Part shown: piece after piece, positions 7,348 to 58,821 of the stretch | Layout of the letters: each line of letters opens with the position of its first letter | Position numbering within the stretch: the first letter of the stretch is position 1 | Assembly: GCA_002104945.1 (NCBI GenBank) | Contig: MCFH01000042.1 | Span: 310,001 to 374,000 of the forward strand | Source of the DNA: Piromyces finnis finn | Lineage: Eukaryota; Fungi; Neocallimastigomycota | Length of the DNA stretch: 64,000 nt | Reading direction: 5' to 3' | Notes under the pieces: generated by a model | What the model was told of the DNA's origin: nothing | Database searches by the model: none | Seen by the model: only the letters and a program-made list of their open reading frames with translations | Position numbers and translations under genes: made by a program

Positions 7348-8442
7348 TTGAATATTTTATTCTTAATTGCTGCTGGTTCAGTATACGCTTCCTCATGTCA
7401 TAAAGATTATGAATGTTGTTCTCATTGTAATATTGTAATGACTGAAAGAAATGAAAATTGGGGAGTTGAAAATGGACAATTTTGTGTAATAGACAAAATA
7501 AAATGTGGTTATTGTAAATTTGAAAAGTATGGTTATCAATGTTGCTCTCATTGTAATACTCTTACTACAAATATAATAGGGGAATGGGGATATGAAAATA
7601 ATAAATTATGTGGTATTAAAGATGCATGTGAAAATGTGGATAATAATAATTTCTTTGATAATGAACTTTTTTATTGAACCAATTATCAAAAATGTGATTG
7701 AATCAAATATGTTAGAAATGAGTGAAGAATTAAAAGCTATGGATGAGAATATCTATAATATTCCTACTGCTCATTGGTTAAATTGGTATAAACTTTGTGG
7801 AGTTTCGTATATTTTGCATGGTGGAGAATCCATTGAAAAGGATTATGAAGATGAAATAAGTGAGGTTCTTGAGTCTGCTGATTCAAGGACTGTCACTTTC
7901 GTTCTAAATATATTAAGGTATAAATCATGTAAAGAATATATATATTTATATAATGATAATGCAAAGGAGAGAGGTCCTGAAAATGGTCTTAGAGTGAATG
8001 CTAATACCATTAAAAATTATCGTAAGGCTAAGGTAGCCATAGTGATTGATCCAGGTCTTATTGGTAACTATACTACAGATTTCGATTCTACTGAAAAATG
8101 TGAAAAAATTCATAAACTTCAAAAGGAATACCTTATTTCTGCTCTTAAACAATTTTCAAATCGTAGTAATATTAGTGTATACCTTGATGTTTCTGATAGT
8201 AAGTTATTAGGTTCAAAAGTTGATGAAGTAGCTGCATTTGTTAAAGAACTTTTGAAAGAGTCTAATGCTACTATTCATGGTTTCAGTACTATCAATCTGT
8301 TGAAAGTGAATACGCTTACCATGAAAAGCTTAATGCTGCTCTTGAAAAAATTGGAATTTATGGAAAGAAGTTCATTGTTGATACAAGTCGAAATGGTATT
8401 GATTTTACTAAAGAATATGATGATGACAAAATTTTGAAATGA
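7348..8442 (+). pseudogene. Disrupted double-dockerin (CBM10/NCDD) + GH6 cellobiohydrolase-like gene
   Basis: Signal-like N-terminus starting at TTG; two dockerins (CC...WGVENGQFC, CC...WGYENNKLCGI); GH6 landmarks NFFDNELF, IPTAHWL, TVTFVL, VYLD and, in a shifted frame, YQSVESEYAYHEKLNAALE...KFIVDTSRNG. Frameshift in a T6 run (~7667), a second near 8290, and a premature stop removing the C-terminal WCN...KTPGEADG region. Confidence 0.85.
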
Positions 8443-37158: not shown

Positions 37159-39852
37159 CTATTTTACAGATGTTGTGTAATGACAACTTACTACTTTATT
37201 TTTAATTTTTGATGAGTCAAATGTTTTTGTTTGAAAAGTATCTGAACCTTGATTTTCTATTTCGGAATTTGAAGTTACAATTGATGAATTCATTACAAAT
37301 TTAAAAGAGTTACTATTATTATTTTTGAAAAAATCATGAGATAATCTATCAATATCACTCATTTTTCCAAATCTACTAAATATTTTATATTTTATAGTTC
37401 TTATATAAAACATGAAGAAATGACTTGAAATAATGTAGATGATAGTGACATAGATTTGAATCAAATAAAAAACTTCAAATCTTGAAGTTTCAAAAAAATT
37501 AATAATCAATAAAACTATTAAAGAAGGGAAACTTGCTGACATCATTATGGATAAATCTCTAATTTCATGGTATGAATCATTAATGTTCCACTCCAAAAAT
37601 ATTAATATAATAATATAAAGGTATATTAAGGAATGGAAAATGATTTTTATGATTATTAGTAAAAGTGAAAATGTATTTTTATGTTGACAGGAATAGTGAT
37701 TATTTTCATTATCATAAATGTGTTCGGCCAGTAAATAGGGTGAAGCAAGATATAATAAATTATAGAGTATTTCTGCAAAAAAAATTGAAAACATAAATAG
37801 TAATCTATGTTTTTTCACCCATTTCGTAAAAGTATTCCCAATTGGATAATTAGTGATCAGTTTTTGTAAGAATGGAACGTAAACCAAGGCATATCCATTT
37901 GAAAATAAAATAATTTTGAGATTACACTTTAATAATGATAATTCTCCCATGCTTAAAGCTGTTGATGCTATTATCAATAGGAAACCAACAATATGAAGAA
38001 TCCATGACTCTATACTTAAAAATCTGAAATATCTTTTTAATAATGGAATGAAAAGTAATATTGTTGAAAATATTACTAAAAAGAAGGTTATTATTAAACT
38101 AATAAAAGCAACTAGTCCATAGTCTGAATGCATTGTGAAATAATGAATTCTTGTCAGATTGTCAATACTATTTAAAATGTCTTTTACAGGTCGTTTATTA
38201 AAAAAAAATTCATAAACATAATTGACTACTTTGGAAGAGTAACTATCATAATCATCAACTAATGAACTTGGTCTTGGAATACTTTGAATTTTTTTTGCTA
38301 ATTCACAATCTAATATTGAACAGATTTCTTCATCAACGTACAAACTTTTCATAGCCGTATAACAATTGAATATTTTTACAAAAAAGTTTTTTTGAACATA
38401 GGCTGAGGCAAAATATTTTACTACTTCTATGGAAGCTTCTAAATTTTTTTCAGGAATAAATTTAGCTATACCAATGTTATAACCGGTAAGACAGGATCCA
38501 TGAATTCCTTTTATTTCTCCAGGCATTTCAGACATAGTATAACCAGGTAACCCGATAATATCAAAATATGATGAAAATACTGAATTTCCTGATATCATGT
38601 ACATAATTGCATAGTTTTCATCCATTGTAAATAAATCGGCTAATCCAAAAAAAAAAAAAGGTTTTTATTATATAAAGTTGAATAAAAAGGAGTATATATA
38701 TTTTCATATTAATATATAAATATACTTATATTTATAATATGTATATTTTTTTAAAAAAATATGATTTATTATTTTTACTTGATGATGTTTCATTTTTTAT
38801 TTTATCCAATTTATTCATTGCGTCAAGTGCTATTTTACTGTTAAATTCAGGTATTGGTGAATCTTTTGTTTCTCTAAAAGAGTATAAATATTCATAAAGT
38901 GAACACATTGTTATATCATTTTCTATTATTTTATTATTTATTTTATTAAATAAATAAAAATAATTATTAACATCAACATATTAAAAAAAAAAGAAAAAAA
39001 AGATGTATTATTTTTGAAATATTTACTTGGAAATAAATTACTAAATCCAATAAGATCATTATTATTAGTTGCTCGTTCTCCTTCTAAAACAATTTTTGTT
39101 GTTTCTACTAATTCATCCCATGTTTCTGGTATTGTCCTATTATATTTATTCAATAGGTTTATATTTGAATATAAAAGTTTGTATTTCACATAAACTGGCT
39201 ATATTTTTTTTTATTATTTTATTATTATTTATTAATTTATTTATTAATTATAAATAATTATTATTAATTAGTATTAATTTTTTTATTATCTATAATTCCA
39301 TACTAATCCAACACACTGATCCTTGTAGTAGCCTGAGTTTATTGTTTCATCTGACGAATATGAATCAATAATTTCTTTTGGTAAATATTTTTTTAAATCA
39401 ATAAAGTAAGGAGCATAACGTCTTGTAAATAATGGATCATAGATAAATACATCATATTTATGTGACTTTTTATTGAGAAGTGTATCTATGGTTGACGAAT
39501 AAAAATCTTTTCCAATAGTTGAATTTTGTTCTGTAAATAAATTTAATTTTAATTTAATATCCAAGTTATTTTCTTTAACATATCTATTGTTGAAATCATT
39601 GATTATCAACTGATATAATTCAGAGTATGAAAAAAAAGATTGTACCACGATATTAATGGTAATTGCCTTTGTTAAGGCTATAGTATATTATATTAATTAT
39701 TTAAAAAATATATATAGATAAATATTTATTTTAATACTATTACTTTTTTTTTTTCAAATTATATTCTATCATTCTTTTTTATTATTTTAATTATAAATAT
39801 AATGACTATTACCAATAAAACAAAGCAATAGAAAGATAATATTATAATACAT
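37159..39852 (-). CDS. Solute-binding protein (periplasmic binding fold II, sugar SBP-like) fused to class C-like 7TM GPCR, copy 1 (5 exons)
   Basis: Signal exon MYYNIIFLLLCFI; SBP motifs KYDVFIYD, LYSNINLLNKY...IPETWDEL, GYNIGI; seven hydrophobic helices with the TM3 Cys and ECL2 Cys (YSC). Confidence 0.85.
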
Positions 39853-40738: not shown

Positions 40739-43448
40739 TTATAAATCTAATTGTTTGTTTTCAGTTATTTTTGAAATTCTATTACTATTGGAGACTTTAT
40801 AATGATAACTTATTAATGCATTAGATATATCAGATGCTCTTCTATGCGTTTGACTTTGAGATTGAAAACTACCTCTCGTTTCTCTACTTCCTTTACTTTC
40901 TTTACTTAGACTAGAAGAGTCAAAATTATTAAATATTCGATTCTTTTTTATATATTCTATTTCATTAAAATCCTCATCTTTATTCTTACACAATACAATT
41001 ATTACTCTCTTAATATAGATTAATAGGTAGTTTGTAACAGAAAAAAGGATAACATTTATTGTAAAAATTATATTGTATAAAAGATAACTCTTTATTTCGA
41101 TTGAAGCGAATACATTAAATACAATAATCGATATAATATCTACTGCAATCAATGCGGTTATAAATCTTCTTTCATTACGTAACGTTTCCACATTCCAATC
41201 TACAAATAATAAAATTGAAATAGTAATGATGGATCCCATTATACAAAATATGGATAGAAAATTAAAAATTGCACCAAAGGATTCATAATTTACACATTTT
41301 TGGAAATTTTCCCCATTATATGTAAATATTTCAATATGATAGGGTGAAAATAATAGTGTAAAATTAAGTGAAAATTCAATAAAAACGACTATTCCCGTAA
41401 AAATATATTTATTATTTTTAAACCAATTTGATATTTTATTTTCTTCAGGAAAATTAATAATTAATATATAGACAACAGGGATTAAACTCATAGCATGTCC
41501 AAAATAAATTATTGGTATTCTAATTTTACATTTAAATTCTGATCCATCTCCATAAAGTGTATAAACAGAGCACATCATAATAATAGATCCTAATAAAGAT
41601 AGTGTCCAAAACCAATTCGATAGTATTTCAAATTGAGGTTTAAATTTATCATGAAATATAAATACATGGGATACACTCATTATAACGACAATTATTGAAA
41701 TTATAACAAAAAATATTGGACCTAATATTGAATCTCCTCCTATGACCGAAAAATGATAATATTTTGTTAGGTCCTCTATTTTTTTAATAACATCAGATAA
41801 ATCGGCATCGTTATATACATACTCATAAATATATTTCTTAAAATTAATTATGTATAATGGAATATTATCTATTTTAAGTTCAAAATCCAAAACAGGCAAA
41901 GGTTGTGCGTTTTTATATATATTACAATTTATTAATGAACAAGCTTCTTCATCATCGTATAAACTATTGATGGCTGAATAAATATTTTTTGAAATAACAA
42001 ACTTTTTTTGAGTATCTTTTGATGTAATAAATTTTAAAGCTTCAATAGCCGCTTTTTGGTTTTCTGCACTTGAATAACGATTTATTGCTATATTATATCC
42101 ACCAGCAACTGAACCTGAAATACCCGCTTTTTCTCCGGGAATGTTAGAAGTTGTATAATCAGGATTATGTTCATAATACCAAAATTTTAAAAATAATGCT
42201 TTTCCTGATATAATTCTTTCTCTTGTATCATCATCTTCCATTAGAAATTGCGAATCTAGAAGATAAAAAAAAACCAATACATGTATTTTTTTTTAAACTA
42301 TTAATTATTTTTCTAAAAGTGAATAGAAAAATAAAAAAAAATTTTTTTTTATTAAAAAATTCCTCAAACCTGAGCCAATTTCATTTTTTAAAATTTTAAT
42401 CATTTTTATGGCATTTTGTGCTGAATCACTTTCTATGCCTGGATATAAATCAGCATTTGATTTTCTAAATGAAGTAATTAATTCATAAATTGATAATATT
42501 CCATAATCACCCTCTTTTTATATAATATATCATTATTATACAATGAAATCATTTAATGATATGAAAATTATCAAATTAAATTAATATTAAATATTTACCA
42601 CTAAACAATCCATTATATGATATTATATCTGTATTATTTAGCTTTTTTTCTTCTTCCATTATATATTTACTCGTTTTTATTAATTCATCCCATGTTTTAG
42701 GAACTTTTTCTCCATATTTATCCAATAGTTTTTTATTTGAATATAAAACGCTTAATTCAATTGTGAAAGGCTAATATATATATATATAAATGAATTAATA
42801 AAAAAAAATTACAAAAGTTATAAAATATTTACAATATATAATTAAAAGTATTTTAAAAATACATTATATGTATTTTTCTGTATATTATATTTTAAAAATA
42901 ATTCCAAGTAAAAAAAAAAAAAAGGTAATATTTACTAGTCCTATCACTTTTTTATTCCATGTACATGTTTTTGATATAATATTTTTATCAAACATATTAA
43001 TATGTTCTTCCGATATTAAACCATTTAAAGGTACAAAATGTTCTCCATACACTTCAGAAAAGGATGCATAATAAAAAATTAAATCATATTTTGTTGATTG
43101 TCTTGCAAGTAACGTACCCACAATCGATGCATAATCGTCAATACTTGAAGTTGAATTTTCTGGTGCTAGAATTGTTAATTCTATTTGAATATCTAAGTTT
43201 TGTTTTTTTGAATATTTATTAAATTCATCCACAATTGGTGTAAGTAAATTTAATCTCTCACTATATGCATAGGATATTGCTTTTATTTTAACTGAATTTA
43301 TACCACCTGTAATGTAAAAAAAACTAGTTAATATATTTAAATATAAGATGTATAATGAAAAAAAAATAATAATAAAAAAAAAAAGTTAATAGTTACAGAT
43401 ACAGTTAAATATAATGAATATGAATATGTAAATAAAATACAAATTCAT
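40739..43448 (-). CDS. SBP-fold II + class C-like 7TM GPCR, copy 2 (5 exons)
   Basis: Signal exon MNLYFIYIFIFIIFNCI; STKYDLIFY, LYSNKKLLDKY...VPKTWDEL, GGYNIAIN; seven TM helices; same exon layout as the neighbouring paralogue. Confidence 0.86.
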
Positions 43449-43816
43449 TTTATTTGACTTATTTTCTTGAATATTGTGTAATTTTATTATTATAATTTAT
43501 TATATAATATTAAACATATATGTAATTAAGTATTGATATGTTAAATCCTACGATATATATTAAAAAAGATAGAGGAAAAATTTTATTGAATAACATATGT
43601 ATATATTAATATTTATACTTTTTTTTTTAATTCTCCATAAATAATCTTAAAAAATTTATTAAATATTAAAATATTCTATAAATACATTTTTTTAATAAAA
43701 TTTATAATTTCAAAGATAAAAAAAAAAGTTTATATTTTAATTTTTTATTTTTTTATATTTAAATTGGTTATTATTTTTTAATAAATTTTTAATTATTTTT
43801 ACATATTATATAATAT

Positions 43817-44483
<667 letters not shown>

Positions 44484-44582
44484 TATATAATATTATATAG
44501 GCATAAATATTATAAACATTTTTTTCTTACTTATACCTAATAATGTGTTTATTTTTCTCGAAATATTTTAATTAAATATTAA

Positions 44583-46888
44583 TCATATATTTTGAGAAAA
44601 ATTGTAACGATAATTAGAAGTTACATTTAAATCAACATTTTCAATTTCATTTAATGATTCATTTGAATCTTTTATATTCTTTGGTTTCTTTGAAGTAAGT
44701 CTTCTAGTAACTGTAGATGCACCACGTTTTACTGAAGTTGCTCTTCTAGAAAGACCTCTTTTGATATTTTCATATTTTTTAGGATTTTTCTTTATTAATA
44801 GGAAAATACCAGCAGCACCAACAACAGAACCAGTCAAAGCGAAACCAGTAACAACTGTTCCAGTATTACTTGAATCTACTATGCTATCAACTTCATTTGA
44901 TTCTTCATCAACACCTTTAGTATTATTAACAGGTGATACATTTGGTTGTTTATTATCATCCTCTTTAGTATTAGTTGTTTGAATATTATTAATTTCTTGA
45001 TTACTAGTATTAATTATATTTTCACTTTGATTTAATCCATTATTTTCATTTTGAATTTCATCTTTGGGTTCTTTTTCAATTTCTATTGATGAAGTAGTTG
45101 GTTTAATATTAATCTTTGAATCTTCCTTAACAGCATTTTGCTTTACTTTAGCTTCGTTTAATGATTCGCTTGATTCATTTTTATGAACTTTAGCTTCATT
45201 TTTGTCTTGTATTTCATGATCTTTATAATCATATTTGTCTTGATTATAATTTATTGAATTATCCTTACCTTCGTGTTTGTCTGATTTAGTAATACTAGAT
45301 GATTTATTAATAACTAATGGTTCTTCAGTTGAACTTACTTTATTTGTTGGTTGAGTTTCTTCTGCTCTAATAGTAGTTGTAGCAATGATATCGATATTAA
45401 CAGGTTGAACAGTTGTGGTTTTAATTATTTTAGTAGAAGATTCAATAGAAGTTGTTGTAGTTGGCTTAATGACTACAGTAGTAGTAGTTGTTGTAGTTGG
45501 CTTAATGACTACAGTAGTAGTAGTTGTTATAGTTGGCTTATTGACTACAGTAGTTGTTGTTGTGGTTGGCTTAATGACTACAGTAGTAGTTGTTGTTGTA
45601 GTTGGCTTATTGACTACAGTAGTTGTTGTTGTGGTTGGCTTAATGACTACAGTAGTAGTAGTTGTTATAGTTGGCTTATTGACTACAGTAGTAGTAGTTG
45701 TTATAGTTGGCTTATTGACTATAGTAGTAGTTGTAGTATGTTTTTTAGTAGTAGTAGTAGTAGTAATTGGTTTAGGTGTAGTCTTTACAACTGTAGTGGT
45801 ACTAACCTTGACTGCATTTTGTTGTGAAGCTACTGCATTTGATGATGAACTAATAAATGCTATTAAATAAAATATTAAATATTATATATTATATATTAAT
45901 TAAATATTTTCTTACACAAAATTATATATATACCGATTTTTTGCTATTAATATTTGATTAAAAAAAAACTTACGTTGACTAAAATCTGAACCACATCTTT
46001 CTTTTCCATTAAAAATGGAACCGGCTTGTACTAAAGACTGAGTTTCCTTAATAATCATACTAATACCTAATCCATTAATATTCTTACATATCTTTGAATA
46101 ATCATGATTTAAAAAGTTTTGGTAGGAAATACCAAAAACAGCCTTTCCTTTATTAAGGAAATTTTTATATAAATGGCATTCAGGATTTTTAAGTGTTGCA
46201 CAGCTTTCATTAATTGCAAAATCAAAATAATCAGAAACATCATCAATCATAAAAAGTGCATTCTTTAAACCAATAGAAATTCCCATATCATGAGCAGTTT
46301 GACCTAACCACTTTGCAAACTTTATTGTATCTTCTTTAGTAAGTGGATTAGACCAACTTTTAACTTCATCTTGTTGCCAACCATCTAAATTATCAACTTC
46401 AAGAGCATCACACTTCTTAGTAATTGCTTCTTGCATTCTATTTTTAATGAGAGGTTTAAGACCTTCCTTACGAATATCAAGCCAATTTTCTCCAGCCCAT
46501 TCTTCATACTCATTACGAACTAAATTACTAATCTCATAAAATTTACTTTTATCTGAACGAAAATCTTCAAGAGTACCACCTGAGAAATAACAAATGACCT
46601 TTTTATTAGCATTATGAATATTTGTAATGATTGAACTTTCAGTTTTATAATCGATATCAACTATTTCAGCTGGTTCTTTAGAACTTTAAAAAAATGGTAT
46701 TACAATATAAATTTTTTTCTTTAAATAATAATTTTTTATATTTCAATAATATTTTATTATACTTACAGATCAACTTTTCCTTCAAGAACATAATTCCATG
46801 TTGCACCTTGAGGTGGCATCCATCTTGCTTCAGCATTTTTTAATAATAATAAAGAAACAATAATGCTACTAGATAGTAAGTACTTCAT
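44583..46888 (-). CDS. GH114 (endo-alpha-1,4-polygalactosaminidase-like) with Thr-rich stalk and C-terminal TM anchor (exons 46888-46767, 46683-45974, 45859-44583)
   Basis: Signal peptide; VDID, VICYFSGGTLEDFR, ENWLDIR, KCDALEVDNLDG, AH..GISIGLKN, FAINESC; (V/I)(N/I)KPT-Tn repeats; TM GTVVTGFALTGSVVGAAGIFLLI followed by a basic tail. Confidence 0.88.
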
Positions 46889-48094: not shown

Positions 48095-48296
<202 letters not shown>

Positions 48297-48764
48297 ATTT
48301 TAAATTGACCATATTTCGCAATAAAAAAATAAATAAATTTTATTTTTTTTATTTTAAAATTAAATATCAACTATAAAGTATTTTATAAATGTTGACAAAG
48401 GTACTAACTAAAATAATTTATCTAATATCTAATAAAATTAACAATAAAATAGTTACTAATGTAATAAATAATTATTTATTAACTAAATAGTTATGTTTTT
48501 AATTTTTTTTTTATTTTTTTTATTTTTTGTATAGATTTAAATAAATTATTTGTTATATATATTACAATATATCGTTTTTATATAGAATATTTTTAAAAAA
48601 AATATTTTTAAAAGAATATTTTACAAAAACAATTTTCATAAAATAAAAACAAATATTTATCTATATATTATTTTGAAATATTTTAAAAAAAATATTAAAT
48701 ATATTACATTAAAAATTTAAAAAATAAATTTAATTTATATTAGTAAATTTTTAGTAGTGAATTT

Positions 48765-50054
48765 TTAGTAGTGTCTGTGATTCTTCTTCTTATCTTTCTT
48801 CATTTGTTTAAGAAGATTCTTTGCTTCTTCAAGATATTCTTTGGCTTCTTCAAGTTCTTCTTCTTCAGCTTCAATGTCACTGCTATTGTTGCTATCATCA
48901 ACAGCAACAGCACTTTCATCATCATCTTCACCTTCAACTTCAACATCACTATCATTCTTACATTGTTCAAGATCCTTGTTTTCTTCTAAATCACAATCTG
49001 GTTCATCACCGTCATTTTCATCATCGTCGTTTTCATCACCGTTATTATCATTTTCATTATCATTTTCATTGTTACCTTTTTTACATTCAGAAAGATCAGC
49101 ATTTTCTGGAAGAGAACAGTAGCATTCTTGAACATCACTGTTTTCTGGCTTTGAACAATCTAAAGTATCATCAGTCTTACATTCTGGTAATTCACTGTTT
49201 TCTGGTTTGGAACAATCAACCTTACATTGTTCATTGTCCTTGTTTTCTGGTTTGGAACAGTCAACCTTACATTGTTCATTGTCCTTGTTTTCTGGTCTGG
49301 AACAATCAACCTTACATTGTTCATTGTCCTTGTTTTCTGGTTTGGAACAGTCAACCTTACATTGTTCATTGTCCTTGTTTTCTGGTTTGGAACAGTCAAC
49401 CTTACATTGTTCATTGTCCTTGTTTTCTGGTTTGGAACAGTCTGGAGCTGGAACTGGAGTTTCTTCTTCAGTCTTACATTCTGGTAATTCACTGTTTTCT
49501 GGTTTGGAACAGTCTGGAGCTGGAACTGGGGCTGGAACTGGAGTTTCTTCTTCAGTCTTACATTCTGGTAATTCACTGTTTTCTGGCTTGGAACAGTCAA
49601 TCTTACATTGTTCATTATCCTTGTTTTCTGGTTTGGAACAGTCAACCTTACATTGTTCATTGTCCTTGTTTTCTGGTTTGGAACAGTCAACCTTACATTG
49701 TTCATTGTCCTTGTTTTCTGGTTTGGAACAGTCAACCTTACATTGTGGTAAATATTTGAATTCTGGTTTAGAACAGTCAATTATTGGAATGATTGGTGTT
49801 GGTACAATTTGAGTTGGCTTTGGAGCAACTGTGGTAGTTGGAATAGATGGAGTAGGAATAGATGGTATAGAAGGAACGGATGGTGTATTCCATCCCCAAT
49901 TCCACCAATTCCAACCTGAATTATTATTATTGTTGTTGTTGTTGTTGTTGTTTCCCCATCCCCAGGAATCCCAACCCCAGCAAGGTAAACCAAAGACTTG
50001 AGATTGAGAAAGTAAGACACTAACTAAAACGGCTGAATATAATTTGTTGTACAT
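48765..50054 (-). CDS. Secreted Cys-repeat protein, short copy (429 aa; 8 DCSKPENKDNEQCK units plus ELPEC/PVPAP variants)
   Basis: Intronless ORF; signal peptide; Trp/Asn-rich N-terminus; C-x10-C repeats; acidic region; helical basic C-terminus. Confidence 0.9.
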   Translation of the reverse strand: MYNKLYSAVLVSVLLSQSQVFGLPCWGWDSWGWGNNNNNNNNNNNSGWNWWNWGWNTPSVPSIPSIPTPSIPTTTVAPKPTQIVPTPIIPIIDCSKPEFKYLPQCKVDCSKPENKDNEQCKVDCSKPENKDNEQCKVDCSKPENKDNEQCKIDCSKPENSELPECKTEEETPVPAPVPAPDCSKPENSELPECKTEEETPVPAPDCSKPENKDNEQCKVDCSKPENKDNEQCKVDCSKPENKDNEQCKVDCSRPENKDNEQCKVDCSKPENKDNEQCKVDCSKPENSELPECKTDDTLDCSKPENSDVQECYCSLPENADLSECKKGNNENDNENDNNGDENDDDENDGDEPDCDLEENKDLEQCKNDSDVEVEGEDDDESAVAVDDSNNSSDIEAEEEELEEAKEYLEEAKNLLKQMKKDKKKNHRHY

Positions 50055-50792
50055 TTTCCCTTTTTAATCCAGTAAACCTTAAACTTTAAGACTAATTGAA
50101 AAGATTTTTTTAATATAAATTAAAATAAATATTTTATATTTTATATTTACAGGCAGGTTTTTTTAAAAACTTTGATTTTTAAAATTTTTATATAGATAAA
50201 TATTATAAATATTTAAATTTTTTAATAATTGATAATTTTCAAAAAATTTTTACAGAAAAATATTATAGAAATATATTTGATTGAAAAAATGCTAAATATA
50301 TATTTCGATAATATTTATAAATGTTTTATAAATGTTTTTTTTTAATAGTTGTAAATACAATAATACTATTTTAGTATGTTATAATTTAATAATTATTTAA
50401 AATAAAATGAAAATAAAAAAATTTATTTTTTTTTAAAATAATAAACTTTTGATGTTATTTAAATTTTATATATATTACAATAATATAAATAAGAAAATTG
50501 TTTTTGTAAGTTAATGAAGATAAAATTCAGTCTTTTTCGACAATATTTATACTATTTTGAAATATATTAACATTTTTAAATAAGTAGTATTTTATTATCA
50601 CAACATCATCTATTTTATTATAGTTATTTTTATATATTTAATTTTTAAATTTAATCTTTATTAACTAAAAATAATATAATTTATTAATGTTGTAAACAAA
50701 TATATAAAAAATAATTTCTGTTTTTTATAAACTATTTTTAAATTGATTTATTTATTTTAATAATATATACACATTCTATTTTTGATAGTTAA

Positions 50793-50936
50793 AATAATTT
50801 TTTATAATTATATTATATATTTATACAAAAATAATTTTTTATAATTATATTATATATTTATACAATAATAATATTTTTTATAATTATATATTTATACAGT
50901 AATAATATTTTTTATAATTATATATTTATACAGTAA
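50793..50936. repeat. ~35-bp AT-rich tandem repeat x4 in the palindrome spacer
   Basis: ATAAT(A)TTTTTTATAATTATA(TTA)TATTTATACA repeated four times. Confidence 0.75.
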
Positions 50937-52177
50937 TATTCAAATTAATTTGATGTATTGTTTTTTATTAAATATTATTGTTTTTTATTAAATACAAAAT
51001 CAATTTTTTTTTTTTTTTAGATTGCCGTTTATATTATAAATCTATATGAATATGTTTTTATTTCTTTAAAATGTAATACAAACAATTCATAGAAAAAAAA
51101 TAAAATATTTAAAATTTAAATACTGTTAAGTTTATTTTTATAAAATTTTATATAAAAATTAAAACTTTACATAATCATTATTTGGTATATAAAAATACGG
51201 TTAAATTAATGTAATCATTATACATATTATATAGATAAAAGAAAAAAGACGGTAATTTTTATATATACAAATTTACTTTTAAAAGATATATTTTTAAGTT
51301 GTATTTTTGATTTAAATAAAAGTTTATATGTATATTTTTAAATGTTTATTTCTATTAGCTTTATATTTTTCTTATATTTTTTTATTTTTGATATTAAATA
51401 TATATTTATATTTTTTATTTAATTGTAAATACTTCATATATCACATTAAAGCAAATTAATTATAAAATAATTTTGTATATTATTGAATATTAATCCATTT
51501 ATTAAAGATATTTATATTTTTTAATTTTATTTTTCAATTAACCAAAAGAAATATTTACAAATTATTAATTTTTTCAAATTAGTATTTACAAATTTTAATC
51601 TATATCAATATATTTTAATTTACTAAGCGTTAGAAGTTTAAATAGATTTTTTTTTAATTTCAAAATAGTATAAATATTGTCGAAAAAGACTGAATTTTAT
51701 CTTCATTAACTTACAAAAACAATTTTCTTATTTATATTATTGTAATATATATAAAATTTAAATAACACTTTAAATCAATTTATCAAAAGCTTTTTTTAAA
51801 AAAAATAAATTTTTTTATTTTCATTTTATTTTAAATAATTATCAAATTGATAACATACTGAAATAGTATTATTGTATTTACAACTATTAAAAAAAAACAT
51901 TTATAAAACATTTATAAATATTATCGAAATATATATTTAGCATTTTTTCAATCAAATATATTTCTATAATATTTTTCTGTAAAAATTTTTTGAAAATTAT
52001 CAATTATTAAAAAATTTAAATATTTATAATATTTATCTATATAAAAATTTTAAAAATCAAAGTTTTTAAAAAAGCCTGCCTGTAAATATAAAATATAAAA
52101 TATTTATTTTAATTTATATTAAAAAAATCTTTTCAATTAGTCTTAAAGTTTAAGGTTTACTGGATTAAAAAGGGAAA

Positions 52178-54076
52178 ATGTACAACAAATTATATTCAGC
52201 CGTTTTAGTTAGTGTCTTACTTTCTCAATCTCAAGTCTTTGGTTTACCTTGCTGGGGTTGGGATTCCTGGGGATGGGGAAACAACAACAACAACAACAAC
52301 AATAATAATAATTCAGGTTGGAATTGGTGGAATTGGGGATGGAATACACCATCCGTTCCTTCTATACCATCTATTCCTACTCCATCTATTCCAACTACCA
52401 CAGTTGCTCCAAAGCCAACTCAAATTGTACCAACACCAATCATTCCAATAATTGACTGTTCTAAACCAGAATTCAAATATTTACCACAATGTAAGGTTGA
52501 CTGTTCCAAACCAGAAAACAAGGACAATGAACAATGTAAGGTTGACTGTTCCAAACCAGAAAACAAGGACAATGAACAATGTAAGGTTGATTGTTCCAAA
52601 CCAGAAAACAAGGACAATGAACAATGTAAGGTTGACTGTTCCAAACCAGAAAACAAGGACAATGAACAATGTAAGGTTGATTGTTCCAAACCAGAAAACA
52701 AGGACAATGAACAATGTAAGGTTGATTGTTCCAAACCAGAAAACAAGGACAATGAACAATGTAAGGTTGACTGTTCCAAACCAGAAAACAAGGACAATGA
52801 ACAATGCAAGATTGACTGTTCCAAACCAGAAAACAAGGACAATGAACAATGTAAGGTTGACTGTTCCAAACCAGAAAACAAGGACAATGAACAATGTAAG
52901 GTTGACTGTTCCAAACCAGAAAACAAGGACAATGAACAATGCAAGATTGACTGTTCCAAACCAGAAAACAAGGACAATGAACAATGTAAGGTTGACTGTT
53001 CCAAACCAGAAAACAAGGACAATGAACAATGTAAGGTTGACTGTTCCAAACCAGAAAACAAGGACAATGAACAATGTAAGGTTGACTGTTCCAAACCAGA
53101 AAACAAGGACAATGAACAATGTAAGGTTGACTGTTCCAAACCAGAAAACAAGGACAATGAACAATGTAAGGTTGATTGTTCCAAACCAGAAAACAAGGAC
53201 AATGAACAATGTAAGGTTGATTGTTCCAAACCAGAAAACAAGGACAATGAACAATGCAAGATTGACTGTTCCAAACCAGAAAACAAGGACAATGAACAAT
53301 GTAAGGTTGACTGTTCCAAACCAGAAAACAAGGACAATGAACAATGTAAGGTTGACTGTTCCAAACCAGAAAACAAGGACAATGAACAATGTAAGGTTGA
53401 CTGTTCCAAACCAGAAAACAAGGACAATGAACAATGTAAGGTTGACTGTTCCAAACCAGAAAACAAGGACAATGAACAATGTAAGGTTGATTGTTCCAAA
53501 CCAGAAAACAAGGACAATGAACAATGTAAGGTTGATTGTTCCAAACCAGAAAACAGTGAATTACCAGAATGTAAGACTGAAGAAGAAACACCAGTTCCAG
53601 CTCCAGCTCCAGCTCCAGCTCCAGACTGTTCCAAACCAGAAAACGGTGAATTACCAGAATGTAAGACTGATGATACTTTAGATTGTTCAAAGCCAGAAAA
53701 CAGTGATGTTCAAGAATGCTACTGTTCTCTTCCAGAAAATGCTGATCTTTCTGAATGTAAAAAAGGTAACAATGAAAATGATAATGAAAATGATAATAAC
53801 GGTGATGAAAACGACGATGATGAAAATGACGGTGATGAACCAGATTGTGATTTAGAAGAAAACAAGGATCTTGAACAATGTAAGAATGATAGTGATGTTG
53901 AAGTTGAAGGTGAAGATGATGATGAAAGTGTTGTTGCTGTTGATGATAGCAACAATAGCAGTGACATTGAAGCTGAAGAAGAAGAACTTGAAGAAGCCAA
54001 AGAATATCTTGAAGAAGCAAAGAATCTTCTTAAACAAATGAAGAAAGATAAGAAGAAGAATCACAGACACTACTAA
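52178..54076 (+). CDS. Secreted Cys-repeat protein, long copy (632 aa; 23 tandem 45-bp DCSKPENKDNEQCK units)
   Basis: N-terminus identical and C-terminus nearly identical to the 48765-50054 protein; 45-bp units run 52499-53533 (1035 bp = 23 x 45). Confidence 0.92.
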   Translation: MYNKLYSAVLVSVLLSQSQVFGLPCWGWDSWGWGNNNNNNNNNNNSGWNWWNWGWNTPSVPSIPSIPTPSIPTTTVAPKPTQIVPTPIIPIIDCSKPEFKYLPQCKVDCSKPENKDNEQCKVDCSKPENKDNEQCKVDCSKPENKDNEQCKVDCSKPENKDNEQCKVDCSKPENKDNEQCKVDCSKPENKDNEQCKVDCSKPENKDNEQCKIDCSKPENKDNEQCKVDCSKPENKDNEQCKVDCSKPENKDNEQCKIDCSKPENKDNEQCKVDCSKPENKDNEQCKVDCSKPENKDNEQCKVDCSKPENKDNEQCKVDCSKPENKDNEQCKVDCSKPENKDNEQCKVDCSKPENKDNEQCKIDCSKPENKDNEQCKVDCSKPENKDNEQCKVDCSKPENKDNEQCKVDCSKPENKDNEQCKVDCSKPENKDNEQCKVDCSKPENKDNEQCKVDCSKPENSELPECKTEEETPVPAPAPAPAPDCSKPENGELPECKTDDTLDCSKPENSDVQECYCSLPENADLSECKKGNNENDNENDNNGDENDDDENDGDEPDCDLEENKDLEQCKNDSDVEVEGEDDDESVVAVDDSNNSSDIEAEEEELEEAKEYLEEAKNLLKQMKKDKKKNHRHY

Positions 54077-54370
54077 AAATTCACTACTAAAAATTTACTA
54101 ATATAAATTAAATTTATTTTTTAAATTTTTAATGTAATATATTTAATATTTTTTTTTTAAAATATTTCAAAATAATATATAGATAAATATTTGTTTTTAT
54201 TTTATGAAAATTGTTTTTGTAAAATATTCTTTTAAAAATATTTTTTTTAAAAATATTCTATATAAAAACGATATATTGTAATATATATAACAAATAATTT
54301 ATTTAAATCTATACAAAAAATAAAAAAAATAAAAAAAAAATTAAAAACATATATTAAAAACTTAGAAATT

Positions 54371-54737
54371 TATTTTATTTTATTTTATTTTATTTTATTT
54401 TATTTTATTTTATTTTATTTTATTTTATTTTATTTTATTTTATTTTATTTTATTTTATTTTATTTTATTTTATTTTATTTTATTTTATTTTATTTTATTT
54501 TATTTATTTTATTTTATTTTATTTTATTTTATTTTATTTTATTTTATTTTATTTTATTTTATTTTATTTTATTTTATTTATTTTATTTTATTTTATTTTA
54601 TTTTATTTTATTTTATTTTATTTTATTTTATTTTATTTTATTTTATTTTATTTTATTTTATTTTATTTTATTTTATTTTATTTTATTTTATTTTATTTTA
54701 TTTTATTTTATTTTATTTTATTTTATTTTATTTTATA
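54371..54737. repeat. (TTTTA)n microsatellite next to the outer end of the right arm
   Basis: ~365 bp pentanucleotide run starting ~20 bp after the inverted-repeat boundary. Confidence 0.95.
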
Positions 54738-56176
54738 TTTATAATCTCGAAAAAATATAATTTTTATTTTCTTTTTCTTTTCTTTTTTTTTTTTTTAAGA
54801 TGAATTTTCAATATTCAACACTTTTATTTTTCTTTTCGTTTTCTTGTAACACATGTATTGGTTATATAAAAGTAGTTTTTATTTAAATGGGTTTTCGATA
54901 TTCCATTTTTTTATTTTTTTATTTTCTTTTTATTGTAACTTACTTATTAGCTATAAAAAAAAAGAGTTTTCACTCTCTTAATAATGAATTTACTTTTCTT
55001 TTTTCTAATTTATTAATAAATTGTTTTTTGTGGGATGACAAAAAACTATTTTTATGGAGGTTGAATTCTATTAATACAAAATTATAAAAAAAAAAGTTTT
55101 AAATAAAAAAGGATTTTTATTTATTCCTATATTTTTTTATATATTATATCAAAACTTTTTTTTTTATTTTTGATGGTTACTTGTAAAATAATAATATCTT
55201 TAAACATCAATATAATAAATAGTATATTTATAAATAAATCAACCTATTTCACTTTCTTTTTTTTTTTTTTTTTTTATTTTATGACATCTTAAATAATTTT
55301 TTTTTTTTTTATTATTTTATTTTATTTTTTTAATATGCATATATATATACATTGGCTATATTCAAAAGTATAAAATAACACTACGATGTAATAAATCGTA
55401 GTATACATGAAAAAATTTATAATAAATGTATTTATTTAAATAGGATATGTATCATTATATAAAATATAAAATGAAATAGTGATAAAAAGAATTTATAGTT
55501 TTAAATAATATATATTGTTATGATTATAATTAAACAAATAAAAAAAAAAAAAAGAATAATAATTAAAAATGATATATCTAGATATGGATAGTTGTATATA
55601 AATAAATTATTATTATTATTATTATCATTAAAAGAATATTTTTTAATAATAATAATTATAATAATTATAATAATTATAATTTAATAATATCTAAGTAAAG
55701 TTTTTTTTTTAAAAAAAAAAAAAAAAGTAAAGTATTTTTACATTTAATTTTATCTAAAGTATAGAGTATGTATTCTAATAATTTTGATTTAATATTTATA
55801 ATTAAAAATCTTTGATAATATTAATGATGATTTTTTAGTAATTTTAAAGTTTATAATCAAATCATTGAAAATTGTAAAACCTTTCTTTTTCCTCTTTTTT
55901 CATTATTCTTTTTAACCAGCAATAAATGTCTTTTTTTTTAAAAAAAAAAAAAAATCGCTTAAACCATTTAAAACCAATTTAGGCATTTCATTGATTTAAT
56001 ATTCGTGATACTGACATATTTCATTTCTTTATTTTACAAAGATTACCAATGATATTATTATTAATATTCTTATTCTATAAAATTGATTTTAAATTATTGG
56101 TAAAGTAATTGAATTTATATATATATATATATTTCCTAAAAAAAAAAAATTCATAAAAATAATTTTTTTTTTTTCA

Positions 56177-58821
56177 TTATTGGTATCCCATTATTGACAA
56201 TTCCTTATCTTGATCTGGATTTTCATTAAATTTAGGTTGTATTTGTTGTTGTGGATCATGTGTTTGATTATAATTATCAATTAGAATACAGTTATTTATT
56301 AATTGGGACATAATTTGTTCATTATCCATACTATTTGATATAGATGATGTTAAGGATGATATACGTTTTGGTCTTTTGGCTAAAGCTCGTTTATGGTCAT
56401 TCTGTTCAAAAGAGGTGTTATTTAAATTATGATGTGTTGATGATGAATTTGCCAAAGCATTTTCATTGTAATGTGTATTACTCTTTCCATTGTCTGTACC
56501 AGAAGAAGAATAAAGTGGAGGTTTTTCCAATGAAATAGGGTTTAGTTTTTTTCTGAAACTTTCCTCTGTATCATCCAAAAATTTAATGGCTGATAGACTT
56601 GAATCACGAGGAGGATGTGGATAGGAATTACTTTTACGACAAGAATTTCTATGATTTTTATTTACATTTGGGGAAGGAAGATGAGGATCTTTGGAGTGAC
56701 CTAATTCACCTAATATAGGAGTCCATTCTGTCTCTTTTGAATTTGCTACTGTTGGTATTGTAGGATTACCACCGCTTGAAGAACCAACACCAACACAAAT
56801 TAAAGAAGAATCTCTAGGCTTAACATCTGATTTAGTTAATATTGATTTTAATTCACTAGACGAGCTATAATTGACATTTCCATAGATATTCTTGGCATTA
56901 TACTTATTAACATGAGCAGGTGATTCGTCTATGATGAATGAAGAATTTTTCAGAGAAGGTTCTATTAAGAAATCACTAATATCAATGGATTCCTTTGGAA
57001 TATTTATTGAATGACCTGATACCTGAGGAATATTATAGTCATCATCAAGCGGTTTCGAAGTCATTGAAGTATCACTTGTAAATGGATGAAACAAGGATAT
57101 GTCTTCAATTGGTGGAAGAATATAAGAGCTTTTAATGTCATTATTATTACTACTATTTAAGAATGAAACGTTTGGTGGTCCATTTTGGAAAGAACTATTG
57201 TAATTGTTGGTAGTATCCATAGAAGAGAAATTAATATCAGTATCAACAACAATGGAATTTTCATTATAACCATTATTATAATTATTATTATTATTATTAT
57301 TATATTTTGGTATATTACGAGTGACTTTTTGACGATTATTAATATTTTTAATAATTTTTAGTAATAGATCAGATTTTCTTCGGTAGTACATTAAGAAGGT
57401 TATCACAATAAAAAAGACAAAAATTAATACAACAATGATAATGAATATAATCAAAAGTGTTTTATAATCTCTTTTATTTTTTTCACTCGAATTTATGGTA
57501 TTATCAATTTTAGTATTTGTATTTTTAGAAGTGCTAGAAGCATTGGAAATTGTAGATGTTATCTTTGGGATAGTCTTATTCATATTATTATTATCATTAT
57601 TATTATTATTACTATTATTGTTGTTATTGTTGTTACCGTTATTTTCCACAAGAGTTGTCCTTGCGATTGTTGTAGTATCTAATGCTTCGTTATTTTGATT
57701 ATTATCAAGAATTGTATCATTTGTTAAGGTAGTATTATTATTATTAACATCCATATCCATATTATCACTATCTTTTGTGGCTATAGTATTAGTATCACTA
57801 TTATTGTTATTATCATTATTTATTTCAATATTGTTGTTGTTGTTGTTGTTGCTAATATCCCCTAGATCATCATTTATAGTATCACTATTAATTATTTTAT
57901 CATTTTTTTTAGTATTGTTATTTGTTTTAGTTTTGGTAGCTTTTGTTTCAGGAGAATCTTCAGTTTGAACTTTTATTATTAGTATTATTATTTTTAATAA
58001 TAATGATAAAATAGTTGTCATGTAATCGTAATAATGATCATAATAATAGTAATGTAGTAATTGTTGTTATTAAGAATAATAGAAAATATTAATATACACA
58101 TTTTTACATAAAAATAAAAATCATTAATATTTAGTATAACTTTTTGAATAAAAGTAATCCTTATTCTAGTCATTACTCTAATTTTTAATAGTACCTGTAA
58201 ACATTTTCTTATCAGTAACAAGTGCCTGTAAGCATGAATCCGAACAAGTATAATAATTTGAATTATTTCTATTCCCTTTCACTTTAATAAATTTTACTTT
58301 AGCCTTACTTTTTTCATTCATTTTAAAATAATTGAAAAAAATAGGAGTGTCTACATTTTCGATGGTATAACAAATATTGGTGGTACAAGCTACATTAATT
58401 TTTATAATAAAATTAAAAATAATATCTATATTACTATACAATTGGCACTATGATTCATTAAATACAAAATTATAAAAGTTTAAATATTTCTTTTTTTATA
58501 TTTGTTATGATAATATATTATAATGTTTAAGAAAAACTTTATATTATTCTCTTTTTCAACTATTGTTTTTTCTCTTGATATATATATATATATATATATA
58601 TACTAAAATTATTAAAAATATATACCTTTTGGGCATTCATAAACACTATTTGTAGATGGATTATTAATTTCCATACAACCCCATTGAGCATTACACCATT
58701 GACACTGTTTATTTGCTCTACAACTTTTCTTTGTATCCAATGAAAAGCAATCTGTTTGTTTTGCACATTGTACCAATACAATGTGTATTAATGTTAAAAA
58801 TATATAAATGAACTTTTTCAT
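56177..58821 (-). CDS. Type I membrane protein: signal peptide, PSI-like Cys-rich domain, Asn/Thr stalk, TM, long Ser/Asn-rich tail (exons 58821-58626, 58389-58195, 57969-56177)
   Basis: C...SC...CQWC...C pattern; phase-consistent junctions CPK-ACT and FT-VQTED; TM LLIIFIIIVVLIFVFFIVITFLMYY followed by RRK. Confidence 0.78.

Follow-up and report, generated by a model that had tools for sequence, protein, structure and literature searches.

Human Y-chromosome palindrome P6 and the palindromes of primate X chromosomes are built of inverted arms that carry genes and enclose a unique spacer (PMC3723533, PMC8327919), and rare inversions are known in the Y-chromosome palindromes (PMC3723533). The intragenic repeats of the yeast FLO1, FLO11 and HPF1 genes are in-frame, homogeneous coding minisatellites in genes for secreted proteins (PMC7263189, PMC3537727), and ectopic recombination among the yeast FLO genes makes chimaeric alleles (PMC3512402). 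Features of both systems are combined in a pair of head-to-head genes, here called L and R, of the anaerobic gut fungus Piromyces finnis. The pair lies at 48492-54351 of a 64,000-nucleotide (nt) stretch of contig MCFH01000042.1 (assembly GCA_002104945.1, positions 310,001 to 374,000 of the forward strand), which is referred to below as the window. The locus falls under two known kinds, the small palindromic segmental duplication and the gene for a fungal secreted protein with variable intragenic repeats. It is probably a young palindromic segmental duplication in which in-frame 45-bp coding minisatellites then changed length independently.

Besides the inverted, gene-carrying arms and the unique spacer, the fungal locus has in common with the mammalian palindromes a high arm identity (~99.5% outside the arrays here), patches compatible with gene conversion and a geometry that permits inversion. 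It differs from them in being a thousand-fold smaller (arms of 2-2.7 kb versus 10 kb to Mb), in carrying one gene per arm and in having arms that a coding minisatellite makes unequal. Furthermore, concerted evolution of the mammalian palindromes was proven by cross-species conservation, whereas the likeness here is drawn from one genome. The resemblance to the yeast genes and their duplicates extends to copy numbers that shift by recombination or slippage and to paralogues that differ mainly in repeat number (PMC3512402). In contrast to the yeast proteins, the unit is an acidic C-x10-C repeat rather than a Ser/Thr-rich one, no glycosylphosphatidylinositol (GPI) or wall-anchor signal was seen, and the paralogues sit side by side in inverted orientation and not in subtelomeric positions; the likeness is one of sequence.

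A palindrome with unequal arms around a unique spacer

The palindrome and its two genes comprise the following parts.

48492..50563 (2,072 nt), minus strand: left arm, consisting of the 3' flank, gene L and 509 nt of upstream DNA (BLAST/alignment)
48765..50054, minus strand: gene L, an intact open reading frame (ORF) of 429 amino acids (aa)
50564..51656 (1,093 nt), no strand: unique spacer, 10% GC
51657..54351 (2,695 nt), plus strand: right arm (BLAST/alignment)
52178..54076, plus strand: gene R, an intact ORF of 632 aa with an L-like architecture

The two genes face each other with their 5' ends at an ATG-to-ATG distance of 2,123 nt, and each gene has 509 nt of upstream DNA within its arm. 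When one arm was compared by BLAST with the other in reverse complement, homology ended at 48492 and 54351 on the outside and at 50563 and 51657 on the side of the spacer. An earlier interpretation of the window made from its letters alone (the sequence-only reading) had described inverted arms of ~2.1 and ~2.7 kb around a 1.09-kb spacer, in agreement with the lengths measured here. An inverted-repeat search returned arms of 890 and 752 nt with 96% and 88% complementarity, far beyond chance. The locus thus has the arrangement that defines a palindromic segmental duplication, with two high-identity inverted arms around a unique spacer.

A DNA search of the fungus's own genome, covering 56,455,805 bp in 232 contigs, showed that the spacer is single-copy apart from one further contig (C96) described below. 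The GC content of the window as a whole is 20%. No ORF of at least 60 aa was found in the spacer or anywhere in the interval between the genes (50055-52177), an Rfam scan of the spacer gave no match, and a tRNA search across the window, spacer included, found none.

The arms were compared by piecewise global alignment, with the arrays left out of the 1,467 aligned nt. Substitutions were found at 8 of these positions (0.55%), giving an identity of ~99.5%. The N-terminal coding DNA (first 274 nt) was 100% identical between the arms, and the C-terminal coding DNA (last 411 nt) contained one difference, at 48910/53931, which exchanges Ala and Val; the non-repeat coding DNA therefore differs at 1 of 685 positions. 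A Ser/Gly difference between L and R was located in the last ELPEC unit. In the 509 nt of shared upstream DNA there were 7 substitutions and 4 indels (2, 2, 7 and 1 nt), and in the 273 nt of shared downstream DNA a single 2-nt indel. These counts bear out the near-identity of the non-repeat coding parts and the Ala/Val and Ser/Gly differences reported in the sequence-only reading, as well as its few single-base differences and indel in the upstream regions.

In-frame minisatellite arrays of different length

Splitting of the L and R proteins at each repeat unit gave the composition of the two arrays.

49122..49778, minus strand: L array, with 1 FKYLPQ, 3 KDNEQ, 2 ELPEC-PVPAP, 5 KDNEQ and 1 ELPEC-TDDTL unit, then 1 degenerate unit
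52454..53719, plus strand: R array, with 1 FKYLPQ, 23 KDNEQ, 1 ELPEC-PVPAPAPAPAP and 1 GELPEC-TDDTL unit, then 1 degenerate unit
52904..53533, plus strand: two adjacent seven-unit blocks of 315 nt each in the R array (units 10-16 and units 17-23), differing at 1 of 315 nt

This recovered the previously proposed layout of three plus five KDNEQ units split by two ELPEC-PVPAP units in one gene and 23 consecutive units followed by one in the other. Beyond the arrays, L and R are alike in their degenerate units and tail. A basic unit has 45 nt and encodes 15 residues with two cysteines, which form a C-x10-C pair. Tandem Repeats Finder assigned the R array a period of 45 nt, 23.8 copies and 98% matches, and a (CCAGCT)n hexamer repeat is likewise in frame. 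The arrays are thus coding minisatellites, with in-frame units of high DNA identity to one another, and their copy number differs between the paralogues through multi-unit events (8 versus 23 KDNEQ units, with a 7-unit block duplication).

The DNA variants of the KDNEQ unit along R follow the order AABABBCAACAAAAABDAAAAAB. The near-identity of units 10-16 and 17-23 indicates that a seven-unit block was duplicated inside the R array, and this block appears to be the footprint of unequal exchange or slippage within R at a 7-unit offset. Unit variants B, C and D were found only in R, and two further variants only in L; most changes in the arrays therefore came after the split and inside one array or the other. 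The units differ from each other at ~0.5% of the array DNA, similar to the 0.55% of the non-array parts of the arms, so that a single recent duplication with rapid length change after it is enough to explain both. The view that the arrays change by unequal events while the flanks stay alike, already put forward in the sequence-only reading, is supported by these multi-unit changes.

A probable recent duplication and the patchy divergence of the arms

In the history that we favour, an inverted segmental duplication of ~2 kb would have copied one gene together with its 509-nt promoter region and 273 nt of 3' flank, giving a head-to-head pair around a unique spacer of 1.09 kb. Because the unit is an in-frame 45-bp minisatellite with 98% identity between units, replication slippage or unequal exchange between sister chromatids could then have altered the length of each array independently. 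The outcome would be an isoform with 8 KDNEQ units (46 kDa) and an isoform with 23 units (69 kDa) under near-identical promoters. Occasional gene conversion from arm to arm may have helped to keep the non-repeat parts alike, and no dedicated switching machinery would be involved. The structure and reality of the locus, the intact ORFs, the block duplication, the patchy divergence and the family context were observed directly; how old the duplication is, by which mutational routes the arrays changed and whether the pair is co-expressed are matters of inference, as is the stalk role proposed below.

Two microsatellites bracket the palindrome, (ATT)65 at 48097-48294 and the following one.

54369..54742, no strand: (TTTAT)75 microsatellite, beginning 18 nt past the outer end of the right arm (Tandem Repeats Finder)

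The (TTTAT)75 microsatellite may, speculatively, mark a breakpoint of the duplication. An 84-aa poly-Ile 'ORF' at 48116-48370 is the (ATT)65 microsatellite read in frame.

The differences between the arms are distributed unevenly and are concentrated in one upstream segment.

50158..50451 (mirror 51771-52074), minus strand: patch of concentrated arm divergence, with 7 substitutions and 4 indels

This 294-nt patch has seven substitutions, and the remaining 1,173 nt of the alignment have one (Fisher p = 8e-5). Such patchiness is what conversion tracts would leave, and arm-to-arm gene conversion, which the sequence-only reading had invoked to explain the similarity of the flanks, is accordingly plausible rather than proven: the patchy pattern is there, and a simple recent duplication with a local cluster of mutations fits it equally well. 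The patch could also mean that the palindrome is older and was kept uniform by recurrent gene conversion, as in the mammalian sex-chromosome palindromes, which would speak against a young duplication. Selection would then retain a short and a long isoform, while the arrays and one upstream patch escape homogenisation. Divergence of 2.4% plus indels in the patch versus ~0.1% elsewhere, the non-coding 3' flank included, agrees with such a history, and there are well-documented palindromes whose arms are >99% identical and in which conversion and rare inversions occur (PMC3723533, PMC8327919). However, 4 of the 7 substitutions and 11 nt of indels fall within 18 nt, so that part of the patch may be one complex mutation, and when only mutational events in non-coding DNA are counted the patchiness is reduced to p = 0.03.

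The relatives of the pair also argue against long-term homogenisation. Three short paralogues clustered on contig C160 (L017:2750-6975, G000:C160:54749-58974) in -,+,- orientation share 41-50% protein identity, with DNA fragments that are ~70-77% identical, and they are older, diverged local inverted duplications. Their orientation indicates that local inverted duplication recurs in the family, and their divergence that its older pairs were not kept uniform. Furthermore, just one of the relatives found had genomic context (P0008; GCA_016946835.1, JACVTC010000018.1); it is a single-copy gene with three units, and no inverted partner lies in the 10 kb on either side of it. No orthologous head-to-head pair was found in any relative in the searches made. 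On this evidence an old palindrome maintained by conversion is unlikely, and a young duplication with independent array change remains the preferred explanation.

A second contig reproduces the locus

The own-genome search located the locus twice in the assembly, on the contig of the window (C170) and on contig C96 (19,663 bp), which aligns with window positions 38056-58419 in two blocks. The only differences between C96 and the window within the locus are single-base indels. Most of them fall in homopolymers or microsatellites, as is typical of long-read sequence that has not been polished. Over gene L the two contigs agree completely, and the C96 copy of gene R carries seven 1-nt deletions. 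The unit numbers, the spacer and the spacer orientation are the same in both contigs.

Outside the locus, C96 is without a 664-bp short interspersed nuclear element (SINE) that occupies window positions 43820-44483. In the window (43807-44495), this tRNA-headed element has a poly(A) of ~130 nt and both copies of its target, TATATAATATTA; C96 has the precise empty site, in which this 12-bp target is present once (G000:C96:5728-5745). The two contigs are otherwise of the same haplotype. Since the SINE site is empty in C96 and filled in the window, C96 was derived from different molecules, and two sets of molecules with the same structure demonstrate that the locus is real and not mis-assembled. 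The SINE, ~4 kb from the locus, is polymorphic within the sequenced culture, which provides direct evidence of very recent or current retroposition. This polymorphism is probably the reason why the assembler kept C96 separate.

Fold-back chimeras and miscounted minisatellites do occur in long-read assemblies, and the palindrome could in principle be a chimeric long read or contain a collapsed or expanded array. A fold-back would give equal arms and no unique spacer, whereas the arms here are unequal and enclose 1,093 bp of unique sequence. The 64-kb window is contiguous on both sides, with tens of kb of unique sequence flanking the arms, and C96, from molecules without the nearby SINE, reproduces the structure unit for unit. 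An assembly artefact is therefore exceedingly improbable.

Recombination between the arms as a proposed source of variants

A contingency locus requires a repeat that breaks the reading frame or the promoter, and an invertible switch requires a recombinase together with inverted repeats around a promoter or alternative exons. Length change in the arrays shifts neither the frame nor the promoter spacing: the units are 45 and 6 nt long and both ORFs are intact, so that such changes cannot turn a gene on or off. No dedicated recombinase and no short inverted repeats bracketing promoter or coding segments, as in an invertible switch or shufflon, were found at the locus. The promoters lie inside the arms (509 nt each), and a flip of the spacer would therefore leave them unexchanged. 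The likeness to bacterial contingency loci, fim/hin switches and shufflons is confined to the general idea of repeats that make surface-protein variants. Unlike those systems, the locus is eukaryotic, has no frame-shifting repeat, recombinase or short inverted repeats around promoters or exons, and showed no heterogeneity in orientation or array size between C96 and C170 (n=2 assembled molecules).

The sequence-only reading had nevertheless suggested a contingency-type generator of surface-protein variants, in which frequent recombination between the inverted arms or arrays flips the spacer and re-partitions the units. The geometry permits this, because a crossover between inverted, near-identical 45-bp arrays inverts the interval and moves units, and the strong difference between the arrays contrasts with the likeness of the flanks. 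In yeast, duplicated cell-surface genes give rise to chimaeric alleles by ectopic recombination (PMC3512402). Nevertheless, two independently assembled molecules are identical in orientation and arrays, the units are in frame, the spacer encodes no recombinase or other ORF, and the promoters are within the arms. The private unit variants of each array and the block duplication in R point to intra-array events, and the older paralogues at 41-50% identity show no lasting homogenisation. The suggestion is thus not upheld, and we consider it very unlikely that the two genes form a dedicated variation system or that frequent exchange between the arms has shaped them.

By analogy with the yeast genes, chimaeric genes could arise from a crossover within the arms or arrays, which could also transfer units from one gene to the other, and such variation, if rare, would be compatible with a comparison of only two assembled molecules. 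In a more specific form of this idea, out-of-register crossovers between the arrays would invert the promoter-spacer-promoter interval and move units from one gene to the other, so that the pair would act as a zero-sum, two-gene device for length variation. This is highly improbable; if true, it would be a eukaryotic analogue of a shufflon that runs on general homologous recombination and, in an anaerobic fungus, varies a protein of the surface or matrix. A recent duplication with length drift inside each array accounts for the locus without it.

The encoded proteins and their relatives

Both proteins have the same order of segments, consisting of a signal-like hydrophobic N-terminus, a Trp/Asn-rich segment, a Pro/Thr linker, the C-x10-C chain, an acidic region and a C-terminal amphipathic helix. 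There are 15 strict C-x10-C pairs in L and 29 in R, plus one unpaired Cys25. The computed isoelectric point of the mature proteins is ~4.3, and the computed masses are ~46 kDa (L) and ~69 kDa (R). An AlphaFold2 model of L alone, made without an alignment, had a mean predicted local distance difference test (pLDDT) score of 43, and only helix 397-427 was confident (~85). L is present without a single difference in the ESM Atlas, where its model has a pLDDT of 0.47, and it gave no usable neighbours. Searches with the protein gave no significant match in Pfam (best E = 0.024, short of the cutoff) and none in NCBIfam or the PDB. From these features, the L/R protein is predicted to be secreted, acidic and largely non-globular.

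Two further paralogues were found elsewhere in the genome. One, of 563 aa (L015:2494-4185, G000:C146), has the same N-terminus as L and R and 17 longer units. The other, of 719 aa (L016:2627-4786, G000:C200), has 11 DCSKPENKDLPECAP units, with Chitin_bind_1 and an acidic region on one side of them and poly-Thr and pAdhesive_15 (E = 3.7e-48) on the other. Because this paralogue sets the units between Chitin_bind_1 and an adhesin-like domain, the units probably form an extracellular spacer or stalk, and the L/R protein would most likely act outside the cell, as a stalk or matrix protein at the fungal wall or surface.

Several points weigh against the picture of two expressed isoforms at the cell surface. 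The proposed stalk role is drawn from the architecture of one paralogue, and no transmembrane segment, GPI-like end or anchor motif was seen in L or R. Transcription of the pair is hinted at by three sequencing runs from three studies of the same organism, guessed to be RNA, each of which contains 32-34% of the sampled words; one probable DNA run contains 71%.

Relatives outside the genome were mostly fragmentary. A word search with the whole protein returned only two distant, repeat-sharing matches; there was no match when the search was limited to residues 1-110 or to the N-terminal piece, nor in an exact-sequence look-up, and a metagenome locus scan for a related palindrome found none. HMMER against 1.84 billion representatives identified no full-length relative, only fragments and module-sharing proteins. 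The fragments comprised three N-terminal ones, P0004 (73% identity), P0005 and P0026, and a C-terminal one, P0008. Otherwise unrelated matches, including bacterial lipoprotein-like and membrane-anchored proteins, share only a DC[ST]xPEN...C module. Among proteins from metagenomes and P. finnis, the unit occurs in P0001, P0002, P0009, P0016, P0021 and the paralogues on C200 and C146. The DC[ST]xPEN...PEC unit with its C-x10-C spacing looks like an undescribed extracellular stalk module.

The N-terminal part of the single-copy P0008 homologue (L019:11190-11826) is split over two frames with stops, which would reflect either a pseudogene or long-read indel errors, and a Gypsy-type retrotransposon ORF lies 3 kb upstream of it. 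The P0026 homologue, with ~60% identity at the N-terminus, occurs in at least 24 metagenome contigs from many samples (JGI, ENA; L021-L026) and is always called as three consecutive ORFs in differing frames. Such calls point to short introns or to a frame-disrupted copy that is widespread in some often-sampled gut fungus.

Genomic neighbourhood and implications

Elsewhere in the window, two adjacent ORFs on the same strand (37159-38625 and 40739-42277) have 7tm_3 (class-C G-protein-coupled receptor) matches and are probably a tandem pair. Fragments of GH114 (45912-46436) and GH6 (7592-8437) were also present, and this set of neighbours is in keeping with an anaerobic gut fungus. The palindrome is flanked by the GH114 gene on one side and by a gene for a 614-aa protein (56177-58021) on the other.

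For annotation, L and R should be recorded as two real genes and not as an artefact. In anaerobic gut fungi, for which we know of no genetic tools, the pair could also be used as a marker to type strains or to measure mitotic recombination. It offers a clean, small example of an inverted segmental duplication and length drift of a coding minisatellite occurring together in an early-diverging fungus. Two by-products of the analysis may matter more than the palindrome itself, namely the SINE that is polymorphic within the sequenced culture and the C-x10-C 'DCSKPEN...C' unit, an unclassified module common to several P. finnis secreted proteins, an adhesin-like one among them.

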